From Macrostomum hystrix (taxonomy: Eukaryota; Animalia; Platyhelminthes), in contig CATNEN010000008.1 in assembly GCA_950097015.1 (NCBI GenBank), forward strand, positions 2,356,001 through 2,420,000: 64,000 nt of DNA. The letters run 5' to 3'. Of the stretch, positions 3,117 through 37,734 are shown one piece after another. The stretch's first letter is position 1. Every line of letters begins with the position of its first letter. The notes below the pieces were generated by a model that was given only the letters and a program-made list of their open reading frames with translations, was not told the origin of the DNA and made no database searches. A program made the translations under genes and the position numbers.

Positions 3117-3136
3117 GTAGCCTAAGAGTCGTCAAC

Positions 3137-7634: not shown

Positions 7635-7784
7635 ATATAGATTGTGCCCGGTCCAATTTTAGCAGATGAGTAATCATCAAACTACTCAAGTATTATTTGT
7701 GGTACGATGTAGTCATGGGCTGCTTTGGAATAATAGATGTAAGAGGAGTAATGTAAATTCCATTCATCGGCTGAGGTGGGTGAA

Positions 7785-7900
7785 TGAAGCCGATTGGCTG
7801 GTTCGCGGAGTGAGGTAGTTGAATGACGCCGATTGGCTGGTTCGCGGAGTGAGGTGGGTGAATGAAGCCGATTGGCTAGTTCGCGGAGCGAGGTGGGTGA
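7785..7900. repeat. 39-bp repeat x3
   Basis: GAGGTGGGTGAATGAAGCCGATTGGCTGGTTCGCGGAGT-like units. Confidence 0.85.
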
Positions 7901-8161
7901 TCATTTTGAGGATTTGAACCAGCAAAAAAATTTTTTTGGAGTAAACCACGAATTCGTGCTATAAAGGTGCAATCACATATTTATCACATTTTTGTGTAAT
8001 TGTTTTGCAGTTGTTTTTGCACCCATACAGGTTGCGACTAATAGTCAAGTTTTATCGTTTTTTGTAGATCGCGCTTCCACTGTTTACACAGCTCATGCAA
8101 ATATTGTAAATTTATTAATTTTATTCATACATTGGTGCTAGTAGTATGAATGGAATATTTT

Positions 8162-8400
8162 TGAGGCCATAAATTACCACTGAAGGCCTAGATTAATCCT
8201 TGACGCCATATATTACCATTGAAGGCCTTAATTACCACTGGAGTCCTTGTATTTACACTGCTTGCGATGTATTAGTCTCGGAGCTGTAAGGCCGTGGACT
8301 CCCATTCGAGGCCAGATATACTCGTAACTAATGAAGAATTTTTATCATTATAAGCCACGTTTGGCCAGTAGGAGTCATTGTTTACCAATTTAGAACATTT
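8162..8400 (+). repeat. Direct duplicate of about 7030-7251 (array end plus about 170-bp unique tail)
   Basis: 7083-7251 and 8229-8400 are near-identical (TTACCACTGGAGTCCTTG...TTTAGAACATTT). The second copy is preceded by remnants of the 39-bp unit. Confidence 0.9.
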
Positions 8401-9166
8401 CAATGTTCTTCTTGAATAAATTGTGATTCATTTATTAACTAGTTGCTATTAATTGCGATCAGAAAGCATGTATAGATTTCATTCTTCGAACTTTGCTCAA
8501 CATGCACTCTAATGCTTTCATTTTTCGAATATTTTCATATTCGAGTTCCATCTTAATTCAAATTTTTATTCAAAAGTTGTAGTGTTCTAGCTCGTATCAT
8601 TGACGAACTATCCTTCTTGCTCATCAGCATGTCTTTGCTATCAATTATTAATTATCTTAAAATCTTTTTAGTCTGCTTGTTTAACAGGACTTCTCACGAT
8701 TATCTGCAATGCCTACTGACTACCTGACAATAAAATCTGTCCGATTATTGACTTTTCGTCTTGATTTATTTACAACACTGATGAAGCTACTGAAGATTGG
8801 ATGACTCTTGAGGTCACTGTGTTCCGGTGTACAGAGAAGCTTGTTGAACGAAAACACCAAACAAAAATCTTGTGCAAATTTTGTGACGCTTCAAGTTACG
8901 AGGAGTGTCCCAAAAGTCCGTGCACCTTCTTTATTTTAGCCGGTTCTGAGCAACTAAAAATATTCAGACTGCAGCAGTTACAAAGACAATTATCTGCCCG
9001 TAAGAATGACCTGCTGTTTGTTCATGTATCTACTGCCATTCTCGAGATATTTTACTTTTAGTGCCCCACCCCCTGTACCACTTCTACAAAGTGCCGTAGA
9101 CAACAGCTTTCCATCTGATGCACTTCAACGAAACATCCGTAACACTAACAGAAAAACTGTAAAAGT

Positions 9167-10255
9167 TTAATCATCGACATTGTCATGGGGCTTCTCTACG
9201 TAGTCCCCACCACGCTGTACACACTTCTGCCATCGGGTATGCATGTCATCGATGGCATCGGCAAAATCTGAGCGTGGCATCTCATGAAGGAGAACTTGGC
9301 GAGTCAAAGCCTCGAGATCCCCACGACAAGCAAAGATTCGTCCACGCAGAAGCTTCTTCATTTTTGGAAAGATCGCGAAATCAGCTGGTGACAAATCAGG
9401 AGAATAGGGTGGGTGTGAGAGCAACTCGAAGTTGGCCTGCTCAATCGTCTCCACTGTCTTCTTGGCCGTGTGGGGGCGTGCATTGTCATGGTGGAGAAGG
9501 TACGGCTTCTCACATGACCGACGCTTGTTCTGGATATCAGCCTTGAGTTTCTGTTCTGTGGCGCAATAGCGGTCAGCATTAATCGTCTGCCCTTCTTCGA
9601 AGAACTCGACTGTGAGTGGGCGAGATCGATCGAAGAAAATCGTCATCATGATTTTCTTGGAGTGCTTGTCGCGGTGAGCCTTGACAGGAGGTTGAGATCC
9701 CTTTTTCGCCCAAACACGGCTTTCCTCCTTCGTCTCAGGGTCGAAAAGTGGGATCCATGTTTCGTCCCCAGAGATGACCAGATTGCGGACATCATCCCAG
9801 CCACCTTGCTCCTGAACAAACCTGAGGTTGGATGCTGAAATCTCCAGTCGGAGAGCCTTGAGGTCGGGCGTGAGGAGACGCGGCACCCAGCGGGCCGAGA
9901 TCTTTGACAGCTCCAACTGCTCTGTCATCGTGCGATGAATTGTGGACTTCGGGCTGCCGAGCATGTCTGCGATCTCGCGGACTGTCAGTTTGGCATCAGT
10001 TTCAAGCAATTCTTGAATTTGTTGACCAAGGAGTTTGTTTACAGGCGATTGCGGCCGCCCACTGCGCTGCTGGTCAGAGACTGTCAGCTGGCCACTCTTG
10101 AAGCGTTCAATCCAGCCATAAATGGCCCTCAGTTTAAGACCACTGTCTCCATGTTGCTCTTGAAGATGGTCAGCAATCCAACTGGCATTCCAGCCTGCAG
10201 TCCACAGGGCAAAAACCTGGCTGCGTTGGCTCTCGACGCTGTGCACTGAGCTCAT
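9167..10255 (-). CDS. mariner transposase, 362 aa, uninterrupted
   Basis: HTH region, WVPR linker, GDETW, HHDNARPH and HPPYSPDLSPADF motifs. I count 34 residues between the second and third catalytic Asp (DD34D). Confidence 0.95.
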   Translation of the reverse strand: MSSVHSVESQRSQVFALWTAGWNASWIADHLQEQHGDSGLKLRAIYGWIERFKSGQLTVSDQQRSGRPQSPVNKLLGQQIQELLETDAKLTVREIADMLGSPKSTIHRTMTEQLELSKISARWVPRLLTPDLKALRLEISASNLRFVQEQGGWDDVRNLVISGDETWIPLFDPETKEESRVWAKKGSQPPVKAHRDKHSKKIMMTIFFDRSRPLTVEFFEEGQTINADRYCATEQKLKADIQNKRRSCEKPYLLHHDNARPHTAKKTVETIEQANFELLSHPPYSPDLSPADFAIFPKMKKLLRGRIFACRGDLEALTRQVLLHEMPRSDFADAIDDMHTRWQKCVQRGGDYVEKPHDNVDD

Positions 10256-10335
10256 CTTGGCAACAAGAGTGCAAAACTTCAGCGAAAACTTTGAAAACCC
10301 AGGTGCTCACGTGGGCTCATGACGTGGGCTCTGCC

Positions 10336-10740
10336 CAAGGACTTCTATATAATAGCATATTATTAGGGTATTTCTTGCTTCCAGTCCAGATGCTATTATG
10401 TATAGAATAATACCCCCCTGATTTCGTTTCTTTGGCCTAGGAAAGGCTGAGGACGCGTTTCTTGGCCGAGGCGAAGCCGAGGCCCAGAAGCGCAGTCCGA
10501 AGCCGTTCCAAGGCCATAGACAACGATTTCAGGGGGGTATTATAGTATTTAATCCTAAAGCTTGGCCCGGCTCACGAGATTGCAAACCTAAAACTGTTTA
10601 CAGCAACTGTGACCATAGACTATATGTTTAATCGGCCTAGGCCATTAAATCATTTAACGGCCTAGGCCGATTAAATAATAAATGCACAGAATTAATAGCC
10701 AATAGGCCGGGCCAAGCTGGGGATTAAATAGAAGTCCTTG
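10336..10740. mobile_element. 405-bp MITE with 8-bp TSD (P- or hAT-type) nested in the mariner 5' non-coding region
   Basis: TIR CAAGGACTTCTAT / ATAGAAGTCCTTG with perfect 8-bp TSD GCTCTGCC (10328-10335, 10741-10748). Internal palindromes at about 10409-10542 (centre GCCGAGGCGAAGCCGAGGC) and about 10629-10676. Confidence 0.85.
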
Positions 10741-11811
10741 GCTCTGCCAAACGAAGGACGCCATTTTCACCATAGACAATCCAGAGTAAAGAAATTTTAC
10801 CCCAAAGTGCATAACTCATCCAATCTGACATGACTGAAGTTCGACACAATTTTCAATAGATTGATAAAGCTCGAAAACTCTGCTTACGGCACTTTGTAGA
10901 AGTGGTACAGGGGGTGGGGCACTAAAAGTAAAATATCTCGAGATCTCGAGAATATATTTGTCGCGAATTTCATACCTCTTCTCTCCTTCCTCTGCACTTC
11001 TTGTCTGTTTACCTTTCAATTATTCAGTCAGTTCTTACCTCACTCTAATTCTGTATTGTTCTCTACCTGGGGTGCTTTCATTTTTCTGGAAATTTCACAA
11101 AGTTGAAAACTCTAATAGCAGCCACTTTCACAAGGCCAAAGGACGTCATATAGCAAACATTTGACCTTATGAAAGTGGCTGCTATTTAAGCTTTCGACGT
11201 TGTGAAACCCTCTTCCACCCCAACCTTTTATCTCTTTCCGCCGCCTTCTGATTGGTCCGCCTTTCACTTTCTACCCCAGTTGCGTAACCCCAACCCAACT
11301 CTTGTTATCTTCCGCCAACCCCTCTCTACTTGTTTCAAGTTGCAATATTAGGTAGACTGTCAAGGGCACACCTAAAGTAGGACCTGCTGGCAGAATTTAA
11401 ATTTCCTAATGTTGCTCGTAGTTCTTAAATATGTTTTTCTACGTTACTCGTACAAACGTATGGATGACTTTCCACGTAAATAGTAAAAAACTTGCCTCTT
11501 TCTTTCGTCAATGTTCACTCGTCATATCGTAACTCAATTATCATGGTTTACATCGGAGTAGCATCGTTAGGCATAAAAATTAAGCACAAAATTATATAGT
11601 GTATTTTAAAATCAAGTGCAATGAATATTTTTGACAAAAGAGCTAACGCAATAGTTACAAAAAGCCATTGAATTTGCATGTGTTTTAGTGTTTTACACTC
11701 TTTAGAATGAGAGTTCAAGTTACTGACCCAATAAATTTACTCGCATTTTATTTTAAATCTAAATAATTCAATAAAGCTACTTATAGGCTTTAACTGAGGA
11801 GTTAAGTTAAA

Positions 11812-12417
11812 TGATGACTGAAGGGGAGTAGCTGAATGATGACTGAAGGTGAGTAGCTGAATGAGGACTGAAGGGGAGTAGCTGAATGATGACTGAAGGG
11901 GAGTAGCTGAATGAGGACTGAAGGGGAGTAGCTGAATGAGGACTGAAGGAGAGTAGCTGAATGATGACTGAAGTAGAGTAGCTGAATGAGGACTGAAGGG
12001 GAGTAGCTGAATGAGGACTGAAGGGGAGTAGCTGAATGAGGACTGAAGGGGAGTAGCTGAATGAGGACTGAAGGAGAGTAGCTGAATGAGGACTGAAGGG
12101 GAGTAGCTGAATGAGGACTGAAGGGGAGTAGCTGAATGAGGACTGAAGGGGAGTAGCTGAATGATGACTGAAGGGGAGTAGCTGAATGAGGACTGAAGGG
12201 GAGTAGCTGAATGAGGACTGAAGGAGAGTAGCTGAATGATGACTGAAGGAGAGTAGCTGAATGAGGACTGAAGGGGAGTAGCTGAATGAGGACTGAAGGA
12301 GAGTAGCTGAATGATGACTGAAGGAGAGTAGCTGAATGATGACTGAAGGGGAGTAGCTGAATGAGGACTGAAAGGGAGTAGCTGAATGAGGACTGAAGGG
12401 GAGTAGCTGAATGAGGA
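11812..12417. repeat. 25-bp minisatellite
   Basis: Unit GAGTAGCTGAATGAGGACTGAAGGG, about 24 copies. Confidence 0.95.
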
Positions 12418-12600
12418 ACTGAGAAGAATGTAGAATTAACCCTGAAAGACCGATCCTAATTATCTTTTTACGACGCGTGTATACCTATCCCACATTGTTA
12501 AGGACCAGCATGATAAGCATGATGTAACCAGCATCAAAGGAAACAATAATAGCGTGCATGAGGAAAGATCGTAGTTGTTTTCTAATAGATAATACACTGT

Positions 12601-13756
12601 TTACCGCGACGTTGTCGATGTTTGATTGGTCAATCGTTTCTCGCAGCGGACCCGTTTCTCGAAGACATAGCCGCCAGTGGCTTCGTCTCTGACCTGTCGC
12701 CAGGCCAGACTGATGTCGGCAAGCTCCCAGCCGGAGCTTCCGCGAGAGTCCGTTTGGCTGTCGCCGCCTCCGCTATCGCCTCCGCCGCCGCCGCCGCCTC
12801 CGCCAGCAGCCTGCTGATCCGGCGTGGCCTCTAGCTCGGAGACGAAGCAGCGATAGTCTGGCGGGCAGGAGCACAGAAATTTCACGTCGATCGGCCCGTC
12901 CTCAGTTTGGCGACGCTTCCTAGCGCAGACGCCGCCCAGAAGACGGCGCTCCGGCTTCAGGAATTCCACCGGCTCGCTGACGCTGCACTGGGCAGATCTG
13001 CAGCCGAACTCGTACACCCACTGCTCGGACTCCAGGTGCCACCCGAGCAGGTTGTACAGAGGAGCCTGTGTACAGTGTAGTGTGCACTTTTACACTACTG
13101 ACCTACCATTTCTCATGTCTAATAACTGACCTACCATTTCTCATGTCTAATAACTGACCTACCATTTCTCATGTCTAATAACTGACCTACCATTTCTCAT
13201 GTCTGACCTATCATTTCTCATGTCTGACCTACCATTTTTCGAACTTGATTTCAAGTCTCCCCAGTTGCTGAACTACGCATTCATAGCCCACCAGTGTTAC
13301 CCCGCATCAACCGCTGACCCCTTCAGCTCCGTCCGCGCCAGCTGGCGGGCAGTGACAGTAGATCTGCTCTAGCGCCGGCTCCCAGACATTGCGCGGACTG
13401 ACAAAGACGGCCGCCTTGACATCGCTGGGCCGGCACTGGCCGACCCGTCTGAACTCGCCGCATTTTAGAAACTGCACCCGCATCCTGGAATGCTCAAAGT
13501 GCTGCCAGATGAAGCTGTTGCCTGACCGCACATCCACCGGGGCGCTGCAGTTGATGCAGCCGTTGCAGTAGCGACCCTGGTCAACCACTTTGTCTGGAAA
13601 CTGAATCACGGCGTTGCAGACCCGTTCGCTGCCGAGACAGTCGGGCTCCAATTTTTTACTCTTCTGGGCCGCCGGCAGGTTTGGATAGATAGCTAGCATG
13701 GTTACTAGCACCAGCTGCAGCAGCGGCACCAGCTGCCTGTCGGAAGTTGCCGGCAT
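12601..13756 (-). CDS. Secreted cysteine-rich protein, Argos/giant-lens (SLPTX11)-like, about 300 aa, 2 exons
   Basis: Exons 13756-13319 and 13065-12601 join in phase 0 (GT..AG); alternative upstream ATG at 13810. Signal-like LVPLLQLVLVTMLAI. Cys pattern C..VC..C..C..C / QFLKC..C..IYCHCP / YEFGC..C..C..CSCPPDYRC resembles, from memory, the repeated modules of Argos. Confidence 0.55.
13098..13240. repeat. 28-bp intronic repeat
   Basis: ACTGACCTACCATTTCTCATGTCTAATA, about 5 copies, fills the intron of the Argos-like gene. Confidence 0.85.
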
Positions 13757-14559
13757 GACTGCGTGCCGTGTATCTAAGTGAGCTAGTGCGTGTTCGGATC
13801 TCCGACTCATGATATTCTGCACACTTCCCCCTCACAATGGTAGCCTCGCTATCCCCCCCGCCAATGCGGTTGGAGCCCATCAGACCCAGCTGCTCGCCCA
13901 CCCCACCTCCGCCTCGGCACCCCCGCCGTCATTAATTGATTGGCACTGTGGCACTCTTCACCCGCTCGACCCCACCCCGCTATTTGAGGAATCCTCAAAG
14001 CCAGTGCAGGCCAGAAAGTAATGAAATCAGCCGCGGGGGGGCACCGGTCTGCCGCAGGAAATGACTAGAGGGAGAGGGCGAGAGAAGCGGCCCCGACTGG
14101 ACTGCTGAGAGCCTTGTGGGATTTCTGGATCTGGCTTGGTCGAGAATGCTGGATTAGTGCGCAATGGCCGGGACCCCTAAATGCGCTGCGGCCTTCCCGT
14201 TTGGACCTCATCCGCCACCGGCCCGCCTGTCTGGGCCGGCTTTTTGGCGGCCACTTTCTGCTCACCACTCAAAAATTTTCCCTTTTCCTCATAAGGGAAA
14301 TGCGAACGGTGGGTCGTCGTTTGTGTCCCCCGGGGATCTGTGTGGGTGGGATGGCAACAGACCGGGCTTGGTATAGAGAGTGAATGCGGCGAAATGTTTG
14401 TAGGCCAAGTGGGGATACAAAAGTGAAGTGGCGCAAGCTCAAGAACTTTTAGCTAGCTTTGATCCTCACTGGGATAGCAGAGAGAAAAGATTGTCAGGAG
14501 CTCAGCATCTGGGGAGAAACTGTCCATGGTAAATCCGTGTCTGTTGAAAACTTCCGATT

Positions 14560-14890
14560 AACTTCAGGTCTTCATAATCATAACTTCAGGCCTGCATAAT
14601 CATAACTTCAGGCCTGCATAATCATAACTTCAGTTCTTCAGGTATTCAGAACTTCAGGTCTTCAGAACTTCAGATCTTCAGAACATCAGGTCTTCAGAAC
14701 TTCAGGTCTTCAGGTCTTCAGAACTTCAGGTCTTCAGTTCTTCAGGTCTTCAGAACTTCAGATCTTCAGAACTTCAGGTCTTCAGAACTTCAGGTCTTCA
14801 GTTCTTCAGGTCTTCAGAACTTCAGATCTTCAGAACTTCAGGTCTTCAGAACTTCAGATCTTCAGAACTTCAGGTCTTCAGAGCTTCAGG
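14560..14890. repeat. 16-bp/8-bp minisatellite
   Basis: AGGTCTTCAGAACTTC units. Confidence 0.9.
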
Positions 14891-15784
14891 TTTGGAATGT
14901 TACGATTTTCGAATTCATAAGGTCTTCTAATCGCTCAGGCCAGCAGACTCAGTTTAACACTAAGAGGTTTGAGGAATGTAGACGTATGAGTATGAGTACT
15001 GGATGTAGGAACTCAAACAGGAGGAAAGGGGCATATATTAGGCAAGCTCACTCAGTCAACAATGAGGTCATTTGCACAGCTCCCATCCCCATTACTCTAG
15101 TCAGGGAAGGAATTCCACAAAATCCCACAGATTGAAGCGAGGGATAACCAAGGCGCTGTTCTAGTACTAGAGTGGATTGGGGAGTTTGGCTTCATTTATC
15201 TCCGGGCAAGCGAGACCCACTTGGCCGACAGTCGTTAGTCGTATCCAAGACTTATTTTTCCCTTACTGAATCGCAACCGAGCACAAACTTGCACGGAGAA
15301 AAATTTCAGATCGATTATGGGAGTGTGGTCTCATTCTGCCCACCCAAGGCAATCGCAGGGTTTCTGGCTGATTCTAAATATAGATCTGCATGCAGGGGAA
15401 TAATTTGGTAAAAAAAACTGAACGACCGGAAGGCCTGGTCCATTAGCTCAATGCATTCTCTTCTCTTCTCTACTCTCAGTCGCCCAGACGTGTTCCAGCT
15501 CAGTTTGGCAAACAAATTCGCCAATAAAGTGACGGGCATAAAAAATGTGGATATTGATGAGACAGGCCGGGTGGAGAGGCTGTGGGTGTGAGCTGTAGTG
15601 CTATGGGTGCTGGTACGAGCGAAAAAATGGGGGAAAATGAGCGGAGAGAAGAGCATTGTAAATAATTCATTCAGTTGCAGCACTATCCGGGGTATCATTT
15701 CTTTTTAGCTTCTGTGGTTCGGCTATCTAGCCAGCTCGTCTTACCCTCGATGAGGCTGGACGGAATTCGCTTTTTACCAGTAGA

Positions 15785-16912
15785 GACACCAGATGAGAAG
15801 GGAAGGTGCCAGATGAGAAGGGAAGGTGCCAGATGAGAAGGGAAGACACCAGATGAGAAGGGAAGACACCAGATGAGAAGGGAAGACACCAGATGAGAAG
15901 GGAAGACACCAGATGAGAAGGGAAGACACCAGATGAGAAGGAAAGGTGCCAGATGAGAAGGGAAGACACCAGATGAGAAGGGAAGACACCAGATGAGAAG
16001 GGAAGACACCAGATGAGAAGGAAAGGTGCCAGATGAGAAGGGAAGACACCAGATGAGAAGGGAAGACACCAGATGAGAAGGAAAGGTGCCAGATGAGAAG
16101 GGAAGGCACCAGATGAGAAGGGAAGACACCAGATGAGAAGGGAAGACACCAGATGAGAAGGGAAGGCACCAGATGAGAAGGAAAGGTGCCAGATGAGAAG
16201 GGAAGACACCAGATGAGAAGGGAAGACACCAGATGAGAAGGGAAGACACCAGATGAGAAGGAAAGGTGCCAGATGAGAAGGGAAGACACCAGATGAGAAG
16301 GGAAGACACCAGATGAGAAGGAAAGGTGCCAGATGAGAAGGGAAGGCACCAGATGAGAAGGGAAGACACCAGATGAGAAGGGAAGACACCAGATGAGAAG
16401 GGAAGGCACCAGATGAGAAGGAAAGACACCAGATGAGAAGGGAAGACACCAGATGAGAAGGAAAGGTGCCAGATGAGAAGGGAAGGCACCAGAAGAGAAG
16501 GGAAGACACCAGATGAGAAGGGAAGACACCAGATGAGAAGGAAAGGTGCCAGATGAGAAGGGAAGGCACCAGAAGAGAAGGGAAGACACCAGATGAGAAG
16601 GGAAGACACCAGATGAGAAGGAAAGGTGCCAGATGAGAAGGGAAGGCACCAGAAGAGAAGGGAAGACACCAGATGAGAAGGGAAGACACCAGATGAGAAG
16701 GAAAGGTGCCAGATGAGAAGGGAAGACACCAGATGAGAAGGAAAGGTGCCAGATGAGAAGGGAAGGCACCAGATGAGAAGGGAAGACACCAGATGAGAAG
16801 GGAAGACACCAGATGAGAAGGGAAGACACCAGATGAGAAGGAAAGGTGCCAGACGAGAAGGAAAGGTGCCAGACGAGAAGGAAAGGTGCCAGATGAGAAT
16901 GGAAGTTGCCAG
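15785..16912. repeat. 20-bp purine-rich satellite (about 56 copies)
   Basis: Unit CAGATGAGAAGGGAAGACAC with variants. It accounts for the three overlapping minus-strand ORFs at 15695-16972. Confidence 0.97.
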
Positions 16913-17799
16913 TTTAGAAGGGTTGAAAGAATTAAATGAAATAAGAAAAGAGTTGCTACTCGCGAGTAGCAACGCGCGCGTATGAAAAGTACAGGTTTAC
17001 GATAATGCTATTGGTACGAGCGTGGATGCATTTAAAACACGGAAATAAATAAAAGATTGATAGTAAGATATTTAAACTACGTTTAGCCAATTAAATTCCT
17101 AGCTCGCATGCCTCTGTCAAAGAGAGCAAAGAGAATAACTTGAAATAAAAAAACATGAAAAATGTGCATAATTGAGATTGAGCTTGTACGCACATGTTGA
17201 CTCTAGAATAAAAAAGCACGGGAAAACACGGCTATGGAGTAAAAACACGGAGGAGAAAAATCTAGACTCTGGTTGCGAGCAATTCTGAGCTCCTCTGCCA
17301 TCGCCTCCAGTGCTGTTTGTCTTTCAGCCAAAATAAACTGCTGCATGAGCTTCAGCTTTGTACATACTCGTACTTAAACGCTCGTAGAATAGAGCGAGAG
17401 AGAAGAGAGGACAGGAGAGAGCGGAAGGGACGAGTGAGCTCGGACACCCGCCCCCTCCACCGTCGCCGCCGCTCATTTTACGATTCTGTCCATTGCATGC
17501 CGACTGAGGAAACTACGAGACTCGGAAACTCGTAATTCGGAATTGAAGAAGAGCCCGAATTGCACAGGGCGGAGGGCGGCCTGGAGACACCTCTTACACC
17601 ACCTCTCCACTCGTCCGAGATTACCTGCCTATTTACCCAAGTCCGCTATATTTTCACTCGCTCTCCTCTGCTTTTGCTTCTCTACCCTTCGATTCTTTTT
17701 GCGCAGTTCGAAGCGAATTTCGAATAGTGAAAAAGCAAACTTTGCGAAGCACTCGCGCCAAGCCAAAAAATAGCCTGCAAGATTCTCAAGACAAAAAAC

Positions 17800-20700
17800 A
17801 TGGAGACTTCAACCAGACGCGAGCACCCGCATGACCTCGTCAGCTACAGAGACACCGGCGAATTGTCCGACCTCACCGTCGTCATCGACAACGACTGCGA
17901 GTTGGCGCTCCACCGCTTCCCGCTCTACATCAAGTCGGATTATTTCCGCGAGCGGGCCACCGAGTCCCGGGTCAGCCTGCCAGCGAAGTTCCCCGGCGGC
18001 CGGCCCTGCTTCGAGTTAGTCGCCGATTTCTGCTACGGCAAACGCGTCGACATTGGGCCGGAGAACTGCGTGCAGCTCAACGCGGCCGCCAAACTGCTGC
18101 GCATGACCGGACGGGAGAACCTGGCCGACCTCACTGATCGCTACTTGGACGAAATTCTGCGCAATGCCCAGCTCACTAGATCGATGGGACCCGTCGTTGA
18201 ACTGCTGGCAAAGGCGACCGCCACTGGCTGCGTGGGCGAGGACGGCGATGCCGATGGCGAATCGGATGCCGCAGTCAAGGCCATCGCCGAGAGGTGCTTC
18301 ACCGCTCTGCTGGACGCATGGACTAAGCAGCAGCCATACGGCTCCGGGATAGTCGGCGAAAGGCTGCTCCGATTGCCGCTCCAATGGTTCGCCAAGCTGA
18401 TCGCAGCCACTGGCAACGATAGCGACAGGTGACCTTTGGGCTCCACCTGTTCAGATTGCATTATCTTGAGTATGATACCTGTTCAGATTGCATTATCTTG
18501 AGTATGATACCTGTTCAGATTGCATCATCCTGAGTATGATACCTGTTTCACAATCCTCCCTCAGGCAACGTCGGGCCCTGGCCGAGCTGTCCGCCCGCTA
18601 TCTGCATCGAGTCTTCCTTCGCGACGCCAGATTAGAGAAGCAAGCGGAATCGAAGCAAGCGGCCGAGGAGCCAGCGACCGCAGAGACGGAAGAGGAAAAG
18701 GCAGAGAAAGCTGGCGCAGGATCCGACGCGGAGGCCGACGAAGTTCAGCGTTCGTCTAGGCAGCCGAAGCCGCAGTCCGGCCGAGTTTGGCGGCGCCACG
18801 AAGAGGATGACGAGCAGCAGGACGACCGGCTGTTTGTTCCCCAGGAACCGGCCGGCCAGGTGCTGGACCGGGTGATCCTGGCGCTGCCCGAGGCTACCCC
18901 GCTAGCCGAAGTGATTAGCGCCGATTGGATTCAGAGGGCGTTGAAAATCAGCGAGAAGTTCGGCTGCCAGTGCCGCGGGCGCCTTCTGCAGCTGGCCGGC
19001 AACTCCCTGCACAAGTTCCGGCCTGAGGAGCTGCACCAGATGGCCTCACCGGTGCTGTGCGACATTGTGGGCAGCAGCGTGAGGAACAAGGGAGTGCAGC
19101 CTGAGGTGAGAGCTGCCTGCAGCTGCACCTGGGGTTGGTGTGCCTGTTTGGGTGGTTGGTGTGCCAGTTTAGGTTGTTGGTGTGCCTGTTTGAGTTGTTG
19201 ATGTTCCTTTTTGAGTAGTAAGTGTGCTATTTTAAAGGGTTTTGTGCTGTAGTTGATATGGGGCGATATTCTAAGGGGTTGGTATGCTATTCTAAGGGGT
19301 TGGTGTCTATTCTAAGGGGTTGGTGTCTATTCTAAGGGGTTGGTGTGCTATTCTAAGGGGTTGGTGTCTATTCTAAGGGTTTGTTGTCTATTCTAAGGGT
19401 TGGTGTCCATTCTAAGGGGTTGGTGTCTATTCTAAGGGGTCGGTGTCTATTCTTACGGGGTTGGTGTGCTATTCTAAGGGGTTGGTGTGCTATTCTAATG
19501 GTTGGTGTCCATTCTAACGGGTTGGTGTCCATTCTAACGGGTTGGTGTCTATTCTAAGGGGTCGGTGTCTATTCTAAGGGGTTGGTATGCTATTCTAAGG
19601 GGTTGGTGTCTATTCTAAGGGGTTGGTGTCCATTCTAAGGGGTTGGTGCATCATTTTGGAAATTTAACTCTCGCCACTCCGCCCACGCAGGTGCTGGCCT
19701 GTGTGATTGACAACCACCTGTTAGATTTGGCTCGCGAAGGCAACCTGGAGCCGGATGATTTTGTGAAGCTGGCTGGCAGTGTCCCGGCTGAATTTCGGAC
19801 GGGTCACGACACCCTGTACGAGGTGGTTGAGACTCTGCTGTGCTCCGGTGAGGTTCAGATTTACAGTGTATTTTTAACGCCTAGTTATCCCAGTCCATGG
19901 ACTGTACAGGAAAATTCTACGCATACATTAAAGGCAATTCCATCCCGGATGAGAAGCAGCAGGAGGTCGTCAGCATGGTGGATCTGGCTCGCTGCGATGT
20001 TGAAAGGCTTCAGCGAGCCTTGGAGAAGGGCGTCGTGCCGGCCAAGACCGTGTGCCAGTCGGCAATCGAACTGGCGAGGAAGTTTCGCCAGCAGCTGGAC
20101 CTGCGCCCCGTTGGCGGCAGCGGTAGCAGCGGCGGCCTTCGATTTCGGGTAGGCAGAAAGTGAAAAGAAACATTCTCAGTTATTAACCTAAATAATTTTC
20201 AAGCATGCTGATTGGCTGGGAATGAGATTCCTGCTCTACTTTCTACCCCTCATTGCCACCTCGTTCCATCACGCCTCACTATTGGCTGTCGGTTTTTCAC
20301 CCACCTCACTCCACTCCGGTATGGTCAAATTTGATTGGCCACTGGGTTCGGGTCCTAAATGAATAAAAAAATAAAACTGTGAATTTAGAAATAAAGCATG
20401 AGTTCACACAAAAATTCGACCTCTTGAAGAATCCTACAAACTTGAGCTGGCGGCGGCATCATCAAAGCGAACTTTCGCTGCCTAAAAGGCATGAAAAATC
20501 TAATCGATATTTCATCGGGCCTCAGAAGCTGTGGCGAGAGTTTGCTGAACTGTCGGCTCACACTCGCTACGAGTGCTACAGGCGGATCAAATATGGCCGT
20601 TTGCAGCCATGCGCTGGCTTGTTTGTGTGTAACACTGAGCTAATTGGTAGCTGCATTATCTGCCTGCAATGCAACCAGTCATTGAGTTCGGTTGTCAATC

Positions 20701-21839
20701 TAAATGATTATGTCAATCTGAATGAATTTCTAGACAATCACTTAAAGCTTTTGCGCACACAAATTTCGATTATTAAATTATTAATGAATGTACTTACTCT
20801 GTATTTTTATAGCAGCAAAGTGATTGATTTTTTATACTAGTAGCATATAGGAGGCATAATATTCCATGACTTCTGACTGATTTCATTGTCATCATATATT
20901 ATCATATGTCATCACAGTATTGACAAACCCTTTCCAACACGTACTCTGCCCGTCTACCCGTCTCATCTCTCCCCTGTCACATCTGTCCCCTGTCTCGTCT
21001 GTCCCCTGTCTCATCTGTCCCCTGTCTCATCTGTCCCCTGTCTCATCTCTCCCCTGTCTTATCTGTCCCCTGTCTCATCTGTCCCCTGTCTCATCTCTCC
21101 CCTGTCTTATCTCTCCCGTGTCTCATCTCTCCCCTGTCTCATCTCTCCCCTGCCTCATCTCTCCCGTGTCTCATCTCTCCCCTGTCTCATCTCTCCCCTG
21201 TCTCATCTCTCTCCTGCCTCATCTCTCCCCTGCCTCATCTCTCCCGTGTCTTATCTCTCCCCTGTCTCATCTCTCCCCTGTCTTATCTCTCCCCTGCCTC
21301 ATCTCTCCCCTGTCTCATCTCTCCCCTGTCTCATCTCTCCCATGATGATACAGATGGTATGAAAACTCGCATTGGATTTAAAAGCCGCAAACGCAACCTG
21401 TCCCTCCCCACAATAAGCAGGACGATAATCGAGGTGGCGGCGGTAGTCGCTATGGGGTCGCTGCAGGTTGGAGGTTCGAATCCCTGTCCCGGCCGCAGCA
21501 GCACCAGCTAGAGGGTGCACAGTTGGGCAGCAGCAGCGTTCATTATGCCGATCCGTACAGTTCAGGAGGTCCGCCAATTGTTAATTGAGTTTTTTTTTCT
21601 ATTTTATAGCCTCATGTCGGCTATCAAAACAGAATCGTATTTTTCTAGGCTACCGCGATGAGGAAGCTTATGGCGACTTCTCAGATTCTGCTGCGGGCGG
21701 CCGCTACACGGCCCAGGACTACGATGTTGACCTGCTGCTCCTAGAGGCGGAGAGAAGTGCTCAGCAGCAGCAGCAGCAGCAGCGGTCTGCTAATTATCCT
21801 TATTATCAGTCGCAAACGTGGCGTTCTAGAAGGTGGTGA
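17800..21839 (+). CDS. BTB/POZ + NPH3-domain protein resembling the plant NPH3/RPT2-like (NRL) family, about 626 aa, 6 exons
   Basis: Exons 17800-18428, 18565-19105, 19691-19847, 19934-20148, 21421-21568 and 21649-21839 total 1881 nt, all GT-AG with consistent phases. Motifs occur in NRL order: DLTVVI..LHRFPL, FPGGRPCFELVADFCYG, ENCVQLNAAAKLLRMT, NL..TDRYL, IAERC, VLDRVILALP..CRGRL..G..L, FVKLAGSVP..RTGHDTLYEVVETLL, EVVSMVDL.RC...LQRA. Confidence 0.85.
18445..18548. repeat. 32-bp repeat x3 in NRL intron 1
   Basis: ACCTGTTCAGATTGCATTATCTTGAGTATGAT units fill most of the 136-bp intron. Confidence 0.9.
19250..19645. repeat. 20-22-bp minisatellite in NRL intron 2
   Basis: TATTCTAAGGGGTTGGTGTC units. 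Confidence 0.9.
20950..21342. repeat. 16-bp pyrimidine-rich minisatellite in NRL intron 4
   Basis: TCTCATCTCTCCCCTG units. Confidence 0.95.
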
Positions 21840-21959
21840 TTTGACAGGGTTTCGCTGTGGCGTCATTGGAAGCGAACCATAGACATGTGAGCTGTGCGTT
21901 ATCTTTTAGAATTTGAAGAATGTGACTAAGGAACTCCAGAACACTCGCTTCATGTCCAA

Positions 21960-22630
21960 ACACCCACCTTATCTTCCCAGTCTTATCTTCCCATACCCCC
22001 ACCTCAGTCCAATACTGTCACCTCACTCTCATTCACCAACCTCACTTCCATAAACCCACCTCATTTGAATTCAGCCACCTCACTTTCAAACACCCACCTC
22101 ACTCAAATATACCCACCTCACTCACAAACAACCGCCTCACTCATATATACCCACCTTACTCCTATACACCCACTCCACTCCAATACAACCACCACACTCC
22201 TGTGCACCGATATGACTCCTATACATTCAGCTCACTCCTGATACACCCACCTCATTCCTGTGCACCCACCTTACTCCTATACACCCACTCCACTCCAATA
22301 CAACCACCACACTCTTAATACACTCACCTCACTCCTGATACACTCACCTCACTCCTGATACACCCACCTCACTCCTTATACACCCACCTCACTCCTGATA
22401 CACCCACCTCACTCCTGATACACTCACCTCACTCCTGACACACCCACCTCACTCCTATCCACCCACTCCACTCCAATACAACCTCCACACTCTTGATACA
22501 CCCACCTCACTCCTGATACACTCACATCACTCCTGATACACCAACCTCACTCCTGATACACCCACCTTACTCCTGATACACTCACCTCACTCCTGATACA
22601 CCCACCTCACTCCTATATACCCACCTCACT
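21960..22630. repeat. 20-bp CACCCACCTCACTCCTGATA minisatellite (same family at 23385-23592 and 25185-25250)
   Basis: Repeated CACCCACCTCACTCCT core at three locations, one of them inside an ARMC3 intron. Confidence 0.9.
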
Positions 22631-23811
22631 ACACCATCATTTTGAAAAAATGTTATCTAGAAATATTTTGCAGTTTATATTGTGTACTTTACTGATAGAC
22701 TATTGCTTTTTTCAACATAGAGCTCTTCTATTGTAGACAATGCATGCCGTACTCACCGGTTGAGCACTGCCGAAACCATAGTTGCCAGCAAATTTTATAC
22801 CAACATTTTTAATTTTATTATGAAATTTGTTACATAGCGAAAGTTTTCTTTGATTCTTATTTTTGTAGCTAAAATAAAACTTCTCCCAGGATTAGCTTCT
22901 AAAAGACCAAATTGTACTTCCTAAAAGTCATTCCAGTAGAATAGGCAGATCGAGTTTTTGCTGTCAATCAATTTTTTTTCGATCCTTTATCCGCCCAATT
23001 CTAACGAATTTTATTTTGCAGAACACATTTATATTCCTTTTTTTTATCAAACATGCCTTTGTTTAAGAACTTTCCTAGATACTTTGTGCTTATAGTAAAG
23101 TTTAGAACCAAGAAATTCTTGTTCATCAACATGACTAATTACATCACTTTCTCCACCCATTGTTATACTGCTTGCTGCACAAAATTTCAGATTAGCTTCA
23201 AACTAGCGTAATGCAAAATAAAAAGTGCAAAAATAAACCAAAATATTTGACTTTCTTAGCATTACAATTATGAACCAAATTTTCATTCGTGCTTTAGTTT
23301 CATAAATCGCTTTTTCATTACTTTTTTATTTGAAAAAAAAAGATGTGCATAATTGATCCGTAACTCAATTTATATTATTGGCATACACCTAACTCACTCA
23401 AATATACCAACTTCACTCCTCTACACCCACCTCACTCCTGATACACCCACCGCACTCCTCTACACCCACCTCACTCCTCTACACCCACCTCATTCCTCTT
23501 CACCCACCTCACTCATTTACACCCACCTCACGCCTTTACACCCACCTCACTCCTCTACACCCACCTCACTCCTCTACACCCACCTCATTCCTGTAAAAAC
23601 TGGTCAGTAATATCACATAACAATTTTCGTATCAGATGAAAACCAATGTACTTAACAATTTTTAACTTATATATTTAAATTAAGGGGCTGCAAAATTCGG
23701 AAAAAAAACTGGGAAAGCAAAATAAAAAAGCGAGTCTGAAAGAGAACAAGACAATTGATGTTTTTCGTTTCACAGCAAGCCTGTATTGAAGTTAGCACAA
23801 TCGTAGTTTCT

Positions 23812-26800
23812 TCAATTTTTCTTGTAGTTGGCAGCCTCGATGCTGTCGCGTCTGTACAGTTTGCCCGGCTGGTAGATTAAATCGATAACGTACTCGCTTG
23901 GCGGGTATTTTCTGGCTCCCTAAAGGATGCGAAATTACACGAAATATGATTTTAAACTCGATTAAATTAAAAGTATATTTATTCCATGCAAAAACATTAA
24001 TAGCTGAAGTTTACATCGCATTCAGTAAGCCAGACTTCGTTCCAGGCTCTGTTGAGTTGGCCGCGAACCAGGGTGCAGTCGATGCCAACTCGATCAGCCA
24101 GAAACTGAAAGTTGTAATTATTTTGTGTTCCGAATTAGGCAAGACAGTCTACTATACGGCAAATATGAGTCACGTGACAGTACAGAAGGAGTCACGTGAC
24201 AGTATAAAATGGAGTCACGTGACAGTATAATAATAATAATAATTAATTACACCTGCCCCAATTGGGTCAGATGTGCAGCCGACAGCACAGCCGCAGCTAT
24301 TGCGCGGCGTATCTGAAGGCTGCGTACGGCTGTTCAGTCCATGGACTGGGGGGACGCCACACCCACCTTCAATTATCCCAGCTAATGCTGGTACCCATTT
24401 AACAGCTGGGTGAACTGAAGCAATGCAGAGTTTAGTGTCTTGCTAAAGGACACAAATTGTTTCTGTGGAGTCGGGAATCGAACCCGATTTCGTCCGAGAC
24501 CGTTCAAGTCGTGAGTCCGACGCCCTAACCACTAGGCTACGGTTTACTCCCGATTCGCCGAATCCCGATTCGCCGAAATTCCCAATTCGCCGAATCCCGA
24601 TTCTCCGAATCCCGATTCACCGAAATTCCCGATTCTCCGAAATTCCCGATTCGCCGAATTCCTGATTCGCCGAATCCCGATTCGCCGAAATTCCCGATTC
24701 GCCGATTCCTGATTCGCCGAATTCCCTCTTTGCCGAAAAAATTGTTAAGAACATTTTTTGCTGAGCTACCGTACCTCATTACATTTTTACTTTCGGCTCT
24801 ACAAGGATGTCTACAGCAAGTTTTGCTTTTTCCGAAGTACGTGTGATGTTTTTCTTTGCTCACTCAATCTACGTTCCAGAAAGTTAATAAAGTTTAGAAG
24901 CAAGTTTACAAGTTAATGAATGAAGAAAGTGCATTTCATTTAAGTTAGTTTTTAATTAATTTCAATACAATAGAAATAGAGTTCCAATATTTGACCAACA
25001 CTCAAAGAGGACAATGGTTATGTGGTTTAATTTAATTTATGATAAAGTAAGAAGTATTGAATCAGGATTCAGCGAATCAGGATTCGAGTCAGGAATTTCG
25101 GCGAATCGGGAATTTCGGCGAATCGGGATTCGGCGAATCGGGAGCAAACCCTAGGCTACAAGCTCTCTTAGGTATTCTACAGTGTCTACACCCACCTCAC
25201 TCCTCTACACCCACCTCACTCCTATACACCCACCTCACTCCTCTACACCCACTGTGACAGTATAAATTGGAGTCATAAGACAGCATAAGATGTAATCACG
25301 ATGAACAAACATGGCTTGGCTGACCTTGAACAGCAGAGCCCTGTGATAATGAATGCCTGCGTTGATTATGCCAATCGGAATAACATTGGACTGCAGGTTG
25401 TACTTTAGTTGACTGATTGGCAGCTCGTAGCTGAATTTCATTAGCTGGCCGTTTTCGATTTGGCCACCCATGCGATCCGACACGAATCTAAAGCGGAGAG
25501 ATCGGAAAGCTTTTTTCGAGTTTCTTTTTCAGTTGTGGTTGATTTAATCTGTTAAAATCTTTAAAAAACGTGACTGTGAGAAAATCTTTGCATAATTACT
25601 TCTAAAGTGAATATCTTAATTATGAAAATGTTGAAAAAAGAGAAAAATACTAATTGTATAATTTTGAAAAGTACGTAATAGATAAACTTGGTTGGTTTTT
25701 TGCAAATAAAACAAAGTTCATATTTTTGTGACAAAGTGTGTGTGTGTGTTTCAGCAGATCTTGCAACAGGTTTGTTTACTTACAATTCATCACTCTAACG
25801 TTTAATACGTAACGTTTACTCTTTCGACTTTTCGACTCTTTCGTTTACTCTTACTCTTTCTGTAACGTTTACTGTCACAGTGCTTTAAGGTTTTTGTTGA
25901 TTAAATTCGAGAATAGTAAAGATGTAGCTTTGTGTTTTCATTTTAGTTATAATTGCTGTATCATTTAAGAGATACATGATAGACATTATACACGAGATTG
26001 AGATGTTGAACTTGTCTGAATTAAATATCTTTTTAGACATGTTAGATAAAAAATACATGCTAGAAATGTTAGAAACTTTAGAAGTACGAGACACACACTT
26101 GTTAGATATGCCAGATATATTAGACGTGTCAGATATGTTAGACACGATAAACTTGTTAGATATGTTAGACATGTTAGAAATTTTAGACACTTTTGGTGTC
26201 TGTCAGACTGTTAGGCATGTTTCGACATATTAGAGGTGTTAGACATGTTAGAGATGATAGAAATGTTAAATGGGTATTTTATTAGACTTGTCACACAACC
26301 CCTTTGCAATATACTTGTACATGTTACAATTATTCTGGAACTCACTTGGCCAGCAGCAGAATCTGTTCCCGAGGATTGCTGCACTCTCGCACCAGTCTCT
26401 GAGCTTCATCAATGTAGGCCTTCAGATTCGGATCTTGTGGCGGGCGGAAGCCGGTTGAATCTCCGGTTTGGCTGCCGCTGCCGCCGCCGCTGCTGCTGCT
26501 GCTGCTGCTGCTCTTGCTTTTGCTGTGTTTTTTAAGTTGAGAAGCGAATGTACATGATTTTCAAATCCTTCTGAGCCAAATCCTATCCTTGGTATACTAC
26601 TGACTCGGGAACAGTAAGTAGTATATAACAAAGATCTAAAGTATTCTTATCGGTGTTTGGTTTGGGCAAAAACTCCTTTCGGTTCAATCAATATCGTTAG
26701 GTTATTAGCAGATAATTATATTTCTTAGTACTACCAAAGTAATTTTTTCTTGAACTCAACACACGGTTATATTAGAAAAATAAGTTAAAGTGTAAAGAAA

Positions 26801-29800
26801 AATAAACTAAAACAGTTTCTTTCGCTAATTTTACTCATCAGTATTTCATCATTTTTCTTTGAACTGAATAAGCTTACTCGGAACCCTTCGGACTGAAATA
26901 GAATTGAAACTAAGAATAAGTAAAAAGTCTGAAAAAACTAATTTAATAAGAAAAATCTGCACAAACAAGCACTCACGACTTGATTAGGTTTTTTCCGTTC
27001 GGAGTCCGACTTTCCTCGCGACTGGTCGAGTCGCCTTGTCGATCGGTGGCTTGGCTGTAGTGTTTTTAGGAAAAAAGTACATTTAGACTGAATTTTACGC
27101 TGGGAGACTTGTTGACTAGAACAAATGTAGATTGGCTGGAAAGGGGTGAAGATTTGTGCGTTCATTTGGGGTTTGACTGTAAACCAGCGTGGAGTGACTG
27201 GAAAGGGGCTGAGAATCGTGCGTACATTTGGGGTTCGACTGTAAACCAGCGTGGAGTGACTGGAAATGGTTAGAGATTCGTGCGTACATTTGGGGTTTGA
27301 CTTTAAACCAGCGTGGAGTGACTGGAAAGGGGTAGAGATTCGTGTGTACATTTGTGGTTTGACTGTAAACCAGCGTGGAGTGACTGGAAAGGGGTAGAGA
27401 TTCGTGCGTACATTTGGGGTTTGACTGTAAACCAGCGTGGAGTGACTGGAAAGGGGTAGAGATTCGTGCGTACATTTGGGGCTCGACTGTAAACCAGCGT
27501 GGAGTGACTGGAAAGGGGTAGAGATTCGTGCGTACATTTGGGGTTTGACTTTAAACCAGCGTGGAGTGACTGAAAAGGGGTAGAGATTCGTGCGTACATT
27601 TTGGACTTGACTTTAAACCAGCGATTACTGTCTGGAAAGGATTACCGATTCGTATGAGTAGTTATGCCAAGCTTTTATAGTGGATGAAGTGACTGGGACC
27701 TTGAAAATGTAAATTGTTCTCACGTTAGTTCAGCTGGTTGGGCAACGTTGATGAGTAGCACCGGCCGTTTAATGTTAACAGGCTGAGCGCAGTAGGTCTG
27801 CAGCGGTGCCAGCTTCTCACCTGGGCGAACCTGTCCAACATCGTAGAACAAATCCGGCACCTTGTCCTTGGTGTCTGTATCGGAATTTAATACAATCGAT
27901 TGCATACATTTAAAACCGAAACTAAATGTTCCGATTTTAGATGGTTACGTAGGTTTAATACTCTACAAATAGTAGAAACAAGTACAACTGACTCACCCAA
28001 CTTTCCAGCCAGGGCGTACTTCAAGCTGAGATTGTTACTCAGCAGGCTGGCCTCCGCAGCCTCAGTGTAGGGACTTCGCTTGGTTTCAGAGCTGTTAAAT
28101 TCTTGAAGAATTTCCAGACCGCTGGAAAGGAAATTTTGTAGTCTTCCAATTACTTTTCTAATTCACCCGACTGGGATTCACCCGACTGGGATTCACCCGA
28201 CTGGGATTCACCCGACTGGGATTCACCCGACTGGGATTCACCCGACTGGGATTCACCCGACTGGGATTCACCCGACTGGGATTCACCCGACTGGGATTCA
28301 CCCGACTGGGATTCACCCGACTGGGATTCACCCGACTGGGATTCACCCGACTGGGATTCACCTGACTGGGATTCACCCGACTGGGATTCACCCGACTGGG
28401 ATTCACCCGACTGGGATTCACCCGACTGGGATTCACCCGACTGGGATTCACCCGACTGGGATTCACCCGACTGGGAAATTTGAACTGAGAACGCCCTTAC
28501 CCGATCCTGTAAAACTCCACGGAAGTCTCGTAATCCACCAGCAGCAGAGATATCGCAATCGCTGTCGCCCGACGCACTTCGTCAGCTGACGTCGGCTTCA
28601 TCAGCGGGGCCAGGAGGGCGAGGCCACCGCTGTCGCGGAACTCAGCCCTTGGTTGGGGCTCGCGGATGTAAGCGGCGACAGCTTGGGCTGCCTTCAGCTG
28701 TGACTGGGGCGACCTGAAATTTGGTAAGAGAGCACCCTTTTGAAAAGCATGCCGTTTTTAATGACCTGTGCTGAATTCTATACCTGGAAGCCAGCGGTGT
28801 CATCAGAGCCTCCACCATCCCATTGTCAAGGACGCGTTGACGCAGCGTCTCGTCGGCCGACATGTTTATCAGCGTTGCTAGGCCGTTGCTAACTACCTGG
28901 TCGCTCTCGTGTTTCAAACAGCCGAGCAAATTTTCTAAGCCGTGATTGGCTGAGGCCACAATCCTGGAATTCGGAAAAATAAAGATTTGGTCAAACCAAT
29001 TTTAACACTAGAAAAATCACGGGGTATTAAAAAACCAACTTTTTTCTTTGTGTATCTCCTAAAATATTCAACCAATTGCCTTGAAAATCCAGAGCCACGG
29101 GCTAAAATTTCCCGCTCTATCCGAAACAACTTCCTGAATCACAAGACATCGGCATCTTCGATGCATTCTACCGTTAAAGGAGTGAAATCGATCAATGACA
29201 ATTGCAAAAACCTGGCTCACGAGCAAATCGGCAAATTCGCTGTCGTCAAATTGGCGATGGCCAACGAGCTTGCCTCCTTCAGCTGGCGATTGTCCAGTCG
29301 CAGAATCTTCACCACCTGCTCCAAGCCGCCTAAAGTGCCGTATTGGGGATAATATCGTGAGATTATAAAGTGAGCACACTTTATTGTTTGTACTCTCGAC
29401 TGGCCTGACATGGACCAACTCACCGGCATTGAGCACAGCCTCCTGGCAGAGGAAATTCTCGCCCATGACGGCGATGGCTTGAGCGGCGGCGACGCGAACG
29501 CGGTCATCGTCATAGCTGAGCAACTGCACCAGCAGCGCCTCTGTGTTGCATTCATGCAGAATTCGCTTGCCATCGTCTGTTTCAAGGGTGGACGATGCGC
29601 GGGTCAATCACAGGCCGTGACTTGGGAAGAGAATGACTTGGGAAGAGAATGACTTGGGAAGAGAATGACTTGGGAAGAGAATGACTTGGGAAGAGAATGA
29701 TTTGGGAAGAGAATGACTTGGGAAGAGAATGACTTGGGAAGAGAAAGACTTGGGAGGAGAATGACTTGGGGAGAGAATGACTTGGGAAGAGAATGACTTG

Positions 29801-33924: not shown

Positions 33925-37734
<3,810 letters not shown>

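Follow-up and report, generated by a model that had tools for sequence, protein, structure and literature searches.

A transcribed BTB-NPH3 gene of the flatworm Macrostomum hystrix belongs to an animal clade that is sister to the plant NRL proteins

The DNA analysed here, called the window, is a stretch of 64,000 nucleotides (nt) from the flatworm Macrostomum hystrix (GenBank assembly GCA_950097015.1, contig CATNEN010000008.1, positions 2,356,001 to 2,420,000, forward strand), and coordinates are given relative to its first nucleotide. At 17800-21839 on the plus strand it contains a gene for a protein of the NPH3/RPT2-like (NRL) type, in which a BTB domain is followed by an NPH3 domain. NPH3 has been called plant-specific (PMC11313873, PMC4327156, PMC1257465). 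We consider it highly probable that the flatworm gene is a BTB-NPH3 member of a metazoan clade, with an ortholog in Macrostomum lignano, that it is constrained, and that its product would be, by inference, a CUL3-type adaptor. The presence of this conserved, expressed and constrained family in at least nine animal phyla corrects the stated plant-only distribution and bears on plant NRL biology and on the evolution of BTB/CUL3 systems. Its value as a discovery is tempered by the pipelines of Pfam, UniProt and NCBI, which already tag these animal proteins automatically; the window gene adds one more flatworm species, and a new member, to a domain family that is known.

Spliced transcript contigs were obtained on the window from each of three public runs of one organism (X3, X4 and X5). 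They define six exons with a coding sequence of 1881 nt, corresponding to 626 amino acids (aa), and five GT..AG introns. One contig of 2293 nt from run X3 spans 17716-22164 without a mismatch to the window and contains all five joints (18428|18565, 19105|19691, 19847|19934, 20148|21421 and 21568|21649), and the joint 19847|19934 was present in all three runs. In these runs 61-64% of the sampled words of 17700-20200 were found, which equals the exonic share of this region. The mRNA (17400..22199, plus strand) extends in its 5' untranslated region (UTR) at least to 17400 and in its 3' UTR to approximately 22164-22199, according to contigs of X3, X4 and X5. A first-pass annotation, made from the letters alone, had proposed a six-exon gene of about 626 aa, and the transcript contigs match this model exactly. 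A homology-guided model of 634 aa, with the acceptor of exon 4 at 19910, was ruled out by the transcripts, in which exon 4 starts at 19934.

Coding exon 1 (17800..18428, residues 1-209 plus 2 nt) contains the start codon, the BTB/POZ domain (residues 16-104, ~17845-18111, as delimited by Pfam), 3-box/BACK-like helices and the LLRLPLQWFAKLI motif. Exon 2 (18565..19105, residues 210-390; joints from transcripts) encodes the N-terminal half of the NPH3-like helical domain, which is split by a low-complexity acidic insert at ~18629-18850; in the model of the M. lignano ortholog described below, the predicted local distance difference test (pLDDT) score of this insert is below 50. Exon 3 (19691..19847, residues 391-442 plus 1 nt) holds the most conserved NPH3 core, D..L.....L....F..LA..VP...R..HD.LY, and the domain ends in exon 4 (19934..20148, residues 443-514, with the intron acceptor at 19933 and not at 19909) with VVSMVDL...LQRALEKGVVPAKTV.... 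A Gly/Ser-rich disordered tail, again with pLDDT below 50 in the ortholog model, occupies exon 5 (21421..21568, residues 515-563 plus 1 nt). Exon 6 (21649..21839, including the stop codon) encodes a predicted acidic helix (YTAQDYDVDLLLLEAE), placed by analogy with a helix at residues 602-620 of the ortholog model, followed by a poly-Q run and the C-terminal end motif NYPYY...RSRRW-COOH at 21792-21836.

Both domains that the first-pass annotation had named were detected with Pfam on the exons of the window. Exon 1 matched BTB (PF00651) with an E value of 7.4e-7, and exon 3 alone matched NPH3 (PF03000), outside the BTB, with 32.0 bits (gathering cut-off 27) at profile positions 181-230 of 258. 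Exon 2 alone gave no Pfam NPH3 match at E up to 1, and the Pfam BACK profile gave no match above threshold. In addition, a plant-only hidden Markov model (HMM) was built from 65 streptophyte sequences, using the post-BTB region only. The window protein without its BTB scored 46.4 bits with this HMM, whereas 500 shuffles scored at most 2.1 bits. The main match covers residues 390-463, and a weak collinear match (3.4-3.9 bits) aligns residues 176-244 with HMM positions 71-133. Only positions ~181-252 of the NPH3 profile are strongly matched by the window protein; less diverged relatives, the plant-only HMM and structure are needed to recognise the N-terminal half of the domain. With Pfam NPH3, the M. 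lignano ortholog (P0153) reaches 41 bits and a Haliotis protein (P0015) 65.9 bits over positions 6-255 of 258, and in the protein from Ptychodera positions 1-337 of 340 of the plant-only HMM are covered.

All motifs quoted in the first-pass annotation were found in the translations, i.e. ALHRFPLYIKSDYF, KFPGGRPCFELVADFCYG, NCVQLNAAAKLLRMTG, NLADLTDRYL, LLRLPLQWFAKLI, VLDRVILALPE, CQCRGRLLQLAGNSL, FVKLAGSVPAEFRTGHDTLYEVVETLL and VVSMVDL. The signatures LHRFPL, FPGG, FCYG, AA..L.M and NL lie in alignment columns whose conservation is at least 70% both in animals and in plants, and the corresponding signatures of the plant NRL BTB are LHKFPL, FPGG, FCYG, LRCAAE.L.M and NL. In total, 49 alignment columns have the same majority residue (at least 70%) in both animals and plants, and 20 of these 49 are located past residue 125. 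Residues L317, P318, L336, C346 and L350 of exon 2 are conserved across the kingdoms, and the most conserved region common to animals and plants is the C-terminal core of NPH3. Language-model features gave a score of 0.96 to plant NPH3 clusters.

A search of the PDB found no solved NPH3 structure. An AlphaFold2 model (pLDDT 80, predicted template modelling score 0.72) was made for the M. lignano ortholog P0153, which is 83% identical to the window protein. Compared to Swiss-Prot models by Foldseek, its best 30 matches (30/30) were Arabidopsis or rice NRLs, with E values of 1.8e-18 to 1.1e-11; SR1IP1, RPT2, NPH3/RPT3, NPY1-5, DOT3, SETH6 and CPT1 were among them. These matches span ortholog residues ~23-595 (~570 residues) with a template modelling (TM) score of ~0.5 both ways. 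In the ESM Atlas an RPT2 cluster was matched (TM 0.58/0.65, 439 residues), and whole-model matches in the PDB past the BTB/BACK part were designed helical repeats with TM below 0.25. The superposition on NPH3/RPT2 models, which the first-pass annotation had put forward as a check, thus extends beyond the BTB for the ortholog model.

The window protein is a member of the BTB-NPH3 (NRL) superfamily. It is very unlikely that it is an ordinary BTB-BACK protein whose NPH3 match is due to chance or composition. BTB-BACK proteins are indeed the next-best structural neighbours (TM 0.3-0.5), and Macrostomum matches the NPH3 profile strongly in part only. However, the plant-only HMM separates the protein clearly from its shuffles, less diverged members (Haliotis, Ptychodera) match the full NPH3 profile, every one of the top 30 Swiss-Prot models is an NRL and BACK is not found above threshold. 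Plant NRLs (NPH3/RPT3, RPT2, NPY1-5/MAB4, NCH1, SR1IP1, DOT3, SETH6) have the same order of parts: an NRL-type BTB, the NPH3 domain and a disordered tail. The flatworm proteins differ from them in forming a separate clade, in their low identity (~20-25% for the window protein) and in the acidic insert within the NPH3 domain.

The closest relative of the window gene is M. lignano BOX15_Mlig026640g1 (P0153, 637 aa), to which the 83% identity extends over all six exons, with 91% in exon 3. Exact splice mapping showed that the two genes have identical six exons, intron positions and phases. On its 883-kb contig, P0153 is preceded by a TIR_2 gene and an unknown gene and followed by an ARMC3-like gene. 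According to blastn, the order TIR, unknown, NRL, ARMC3-like is collinear and in the same orientation in the window (blocks 5989-7604, 12635-13689, 17789-21841 and 23819-32622; exon identities 67-85%). The two orthologs have diverged to a synonymous distance (dS) of ~1.0, and the ratio of nonsynonymous to synonymous substitutions is 0.17 overall, 0.08 in the C-terminal half of NPH3 and 0.14 in the BTB; the window gene is under purifying selection. A second M. lignano gene, Mlig013387g2 (P0001), is a paralog with ~48% identity.

The gene is intact, transcribed and resident in the flatworm genome, and contamination and misassembly are excluded. Plant or algal contaminating DNA, or a misassembly, has nothing in its favour except the unexpected domain, and its probability is close to nil: spliced transcripts from the same organism agree with the gene at every position (0 mismatches), it lies among animal genes (for cadherins, a serpin, an aminotransferase and a mariner-type transposase) and an independent assembly of M. 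lignano has the same gene order. In addition, introns 1, 2 and 4 contain host minisatellites like those of the neighbouring genes, a point on which the first-pass annotation had already argued against contamination.

The distribution of the family was investigated by searching exon 1 with phmmer against 1.84 billion cluster representatives, which yielded 274 proteins with E <= 1e-3, 89 of them with E <= 1e-10. When 60 of the phmmer matches were scanned with Pfam, BTB was found in 57 and NPH3 in 37. Word-indexed searches with P0001 or an alignment as query gave 8-9 matches, probably because the low-complexity insert swamped word selection; an insert-free query (Ptychodera P0019) gave 535. The best 150 of the 274 and the best 120 of the 535 matches were listed, many of them without an organism name. 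All organism-named matches among those listed are from animals or streptophytes, and the animals belong to at least nine phyla: Platyhelminthes (Macrostomum, Schistosoma, Paragonimus), Annelida (Paralvinella, Owenia, Capitella), Nemertea (Tubulanus, Lineus), Mollusca, both bivalves (Ruditapes, Mercenaria, Mya, Sinanodonta, Saccostrea, Mactra, Dreissena, Mytilus) and others (Haliotis, Patella, Littorina, Nucella, Plakobranchus, Octopus), Bryozoa (Bugula), Rotifera (Adineta, Brachionus), Hemichordata (Ptychodera, Glandiceps), Cnidaria (the octocoral Xenia) and Porifera (the homoscleromorphs Corticium and Oscarella). No named match from arthropods, nematodes, echinoderms or chordates was present among the best 120-150 listed. 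Many of the animal homologs are located on chromosome-size scaffolds. The suggestion that the lineage had been lost in most animals is too strong in view of named homologs from nine phyla.

Locus L010 (ENA ctg5968l, 452 kb) contains, at 526-17490, at least five BTB genes in tandem, all without introns and coding for 161-827 aa. One of their products, P0075, groups with the sponge BTB-NPH3-like clade, and the array is a local expansion in a probably sponge-like genome.

The first-pass annotation had allowed that automatic annotations might already exist, and both NCBI and UniProt do name such proteins. Examples are 'root phototropism protein 2-like' (Xenia sp.), 'root phototropism protein 2' (Plakobranchus), 'DOT3-like protein' (Mya arenaria), 'BTB/POZ domain-containing protein At5g48800-like' (Haliotis) and 'phototropism 2-like' or 'At1g30440-like' (Octopus). 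In M. lignano the name 'NPH3 domain-containing protein' occurs, and P0153 is listed in UniProt as 'BTB domain-containing protein'. The names in Xenia, Plakobranchus, Mya, Haliotis and Octopus were transferred from plants by similarity. The automatically annotated invertebrate homologs belong to the same metazoan clade as the window protein and have its domain order, and they share with it the tail motif Y-[FW]-P-[YF] and, in Haliotis, the phase-1 intron; they differ from it in having a full-length NPH3 profile match and no long acidic insert. In the literature searched, which was not complete, no paper on animal NPH3 proteins was found. The animal branch of the family thus seems to be recorded by automatic annotation and unremarked in that literature.

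A phylogeny was inferred with IQ-TREE from 47 labelled rows (27 animal, 20 streptophyte) and 526 columns, using the LG+C20+F+G4 model by posterior mean site frequencies (PMSF), with ultrafast bootstrap and the Shimodaira-Hasegawa-like approximate likelihood ratio test (SH-aLRT). A single long branch with 100/100 support splits the animals from the streptophytes. On the animal side sponges are sister to the rest, and molluscs, flatworms, nemerteans, rotifers and hemichordates are each monophyletic. On the streptophyte side the algae Mesotaenium, Spirogloea and Chara are sister to the land plants. The window protein nests with the flatworms in the animal clade, and no placement inside the plant NRL radiation was found. 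The animal clade is sister to the streptophyte NRLs and not nested in them, and therefore early animals already had the gene, which is not a recent acquisition from a plant. Furthermore, each kingdom joins the subtree of the other at its expected root, which rules out a land-plant donor. The tree proposed in the first-pass annotation as a way of telling ancient retention from horizontal transfer has thus returned an invertebrate sister clade.

Intron positions were compared as well. Intron 3 of the window gene (19848..19933, 86 nt, phase 1), which follows HD.LY..V..LL..G, is at a position common to M. lignano, Ptychodera and Haliotis. In the two plant genes compared, no intron position is identical to one in the animals; the nearest is an intron of Brachypodium, in phase 0 and 4 nt upstream of intron 3, a proximity with a chance of roughly 0.07. 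This comparison too had been suggested beforehand, and its outcome is one intron common with a hemichordate and a mollusc and none with plants. The genes of Corticium (L005) and Xenia (L008) are intronless (single-exon), and bilaterian members have 3-6 exons.

These data bear on three possible histories. In the first, a land-plant NRL was recently transferred into the flatworm lineage and then domesticated. The best language-model and structural neighbours are plant NRLs and the domain has been called plant-specific (PMC11313873, PMC4327156, PMC1257465), but the 100/100 split with the gene inside an animal clade ordered by phyla, the orthologs in nine animal phyla on chromosome-size scaffolds, the intron common with hemichordate and mollusc, the synteny with M. 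lignano and the identity of only ~20-25% to plant proteins make such a transfer exceedingly improbable. Of the two histories that the first-pass annotation had offered, the ancient lineage stands (100/100 clade, basal sponges, synteny, common intron), and the recent domesticated transfer falls. Its label of a plant-type gene is loose, since the animal proteins form a sister clade with a different C-terminal tail.

The tree fits common descent or one very old transfer between stem lineages. A single ancient transfer between stem streptophytes and stem animals, in either direction and before either crown radiation, is possible, though we would not favour it. It would explain why the organism-named matches listed are from animals or streptophytes only, and it would not require the gene to have been lost many times, as vertical descent does for fungi, choanoflagellates, chlorophytes and other groups. 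The intronless genes of the early-branching animals Corticium and Xenia point in the same direction, as does the lack of an intron position strictly common to animals and the two plant genes examined. On the other hand, both kingdoms join at the expected roots across a long branch, as common descent predicts, with no donor signal, and the taxon listing that suggests an absence elsewhere covers the top 150 of 274 and the top 120 of 535 matches. Alternatively, and equally tentatively, BTB-NPH3 may be no plant invention but an ancestral module of eukaryotes that was present before animals and plants diverged, with a core job that is independent of phototropin and auxin. If so, this core job could be that of a membrane-trafficking/polarity scaffold or of a CUL3 adaptor, and members of the animal clade, which has a conserved tail motif of its own, would still perform the ancestral role among sponges, cnidarians, hemichordates and spiralians.

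The C-terminal tails distinguish the two clades. The window protein ends with ...NYPYYQSQTWRSRRW, and the R-R-H-S-[IV]-S-COOH end of plants was not found in it; its NYPYY...RSRRW tail differs from the polybasic RRHS-[IV]-S end of most plant NRLs. In the animal rows compared (P0015, P0019, P0039, P0220 and P0254) Y-[FW]-P-[YF] is common, often with a final [RK]-[WYF]-COOH, as in TYFPYSHRY (Haliotis), SFWPY... (Ptychodera) and PYWPF... (Xenia). The tail motif of exon 6 is therefore common to molluscs, hemichordates and Xenia; no known function was found for it. The plant RRHS-[IV]-S end is the reported 14-3-3 site of NPH3. Because the tails differ between animals and plants, the regulatory inputs of the animal and plant members probably differ too.

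With respect to function, the BTB-BACK adaptors of CUL3 (KLHL/KBTBD proteins, SPOP and poxvirus A55) are among the closest known systems. The BTB of the model is of the long-form dimer type (Z ~15 to BCL6 and PLZF), and residues 3-230 superpose on the A55 and KBTBD2 BTB-BACK structures solved with CUL3 with Z scores of 14.4-14.7 over 184-192 residues, a similarity of fold only. It is from this superposition that we infer a CUL3-type adaptor or scaffold function for the animal protein. In contrast to BTB-BACK adaptors, the window protein has no Kelch, MATH or PHR substrate domain, and its helical region runs on into the NPH3 fold. Arabidopsis NPH3 has been reported to bind CUL3. By analogy with NPH3 and the BTB-BACK adaptors, and with the A55/KBTBD2 superposition, the BTB would dimerise and dock the N-terminal domain of CUL3, and the NPH3 helical domain and the tail would recruit or select partners or substrates, possibly at membranes. 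Phototropins and PIN carriers, the established partners of the family in plants, are not known from animals. Because these, like the AGC-VIII kinases, are plant proteins, the clients would have to differ from those in plants, with the animal tail replacing the plant RRHS-[IV]-S end.

Several points weigh against reading the gene as an ancient animal BTB-NPH3 adaptor. The flatworm lineage matches strongly only over the C-terminal third of the NPH3 profile, and its N-terminal half is weak, as the low score of the collinear HMM match indicates. The predicted structure is that of the ortholog and not of the window protein itself. CUL3 binding is suggested by similarity of a modelled fold, and the function of any animal member is deduced by analogy. 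The deep origin may be vertical descent or a very old transfer, given that sampling beyond animals and plants was non-exhaustive. Finally, work on Arabidopsis NRL5 suggests that NPH3 domains may be trafficking GTPases, instead of or besides E3 adaptors (PMC11313873).

Following the NRL5 work, it is conceivable, though on balance unlikely, that the animal protein is not a CUL3 adaptor but that its NPH3 domain is a trafficking GTPase or a RAB/SNARE-binding scaffold, with the BTB serving for oligomerisation only. RABs and VAMP7-type SNAREs are present in animals, in contrast to phototropin and PIN, and the C-terminal core of NPH3 is the part best conserved between animals and plants. GTPase activity has been described for several NPH3-domain proteins, with RABE1c, RABH1b and VAMP721/722 as partners (PMC11313873). 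However, that paper defines no GTPase sequence motif, so that there is no nucleotide-binding motif to compare on sequence, and the superposition of the N-terminal 225-230 residues on BTB-BACK modules in complex with CUL3 speaks for the adaptor. P335 is not conserved.

The animal clade can be used as an outgroup for sorting core NPH3 features from the add-ons of phototropism. The predicted folds, by way of the ortholog model, match over ~570 residues and 49 columns are conserved, and the BTB-NPH3 body looks like the core, while the tails differ. The animal members also provide tractable systems for the role of NPH3 proteins without phototropin or PIN; RNA interference and transgenesis are established in Macrostomum lignano.

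Intron 1 (18429..18564, 136 nt, GT..AG) contains 3.2 copies of a 32-mer at 18445-18547, and intron 2 (19106..19690, 585 nt, GT..AG) a 20-mer minisatellite of 19 copies at 19267-19648. Intron 5 (21569..21648, 80 nt, GT..AG, phase 1) was placed by transcript joints. In one run only, and at a depth of 6.65 versus ~24, a part of intron 4 (20149..21420, 1272 nt) is spliced in as a minor alternative exon (20429-20624), located between exons 4 and 5. Intron 4 also contains, at 20960-21341, 24 copies of the 16-mer satellite GTCTCATCTCTCCCCT, with a word depth of ~50,000-77,000 in transcriptome contigs versus ~24 for the exons. This satellite is a very high-copy, transcribed repeat family.

Downstream, a 20-mer array (ATACACCCACCTCACTCCTG) is present at 21992-22630 and 23384-23592, and it begins within the 3' UTR of the gene. 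The syntenic block of M. lignano contains a related array (L001 3983-4419), at a different place and on the opposite strand, and thus the ATACACCCACCTCACTCCTG satellite family is common to both species. The introns of the ARMC3-like gene contain long 16-mer and 21-mer minisatellites (29618-30197 and 30831-31669). The first-pass annotation had assigned the 3' flank and an ARMC3 intron to one repeat family, which holds only in a loose sense: the units at 21993-22630 and 30831-31669 have an ACACCCACC core in common and nothing further.

Upstream of the gene, the ortholog of the TIR_2 gene lies at 5989-7604 (plus strand; the open reading frame (ORF) in the window has no Pfam match) and the unknown gene, without Pfam match, at 12601-13822 (minus strand); both are conserved in order with M. 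lignano. The multi-exon ARMC3-like gene downstream (23819-32622, minus strand) is collinear with an 874-aa gene of M. lignano. Further along, the window contains exons of a class I/II aminotransferase gene (35563-37734, plus strand, aspartate-aminotransferase-like), of a multi-cadherin-repeat gene (48966-52418, plus strand, protocadherin-like) and of a serpin gene (61982-63114, minus strand). Between the TIR_2-gene ortholog and the unknown gene, an intact mariner/Tc1-type transposase ORF of 362 aa was found at 9167-10255 on the minus strand, with Pfam matches to Transposase_1, DDE_3 and HTH_32, and this element is possibly active.

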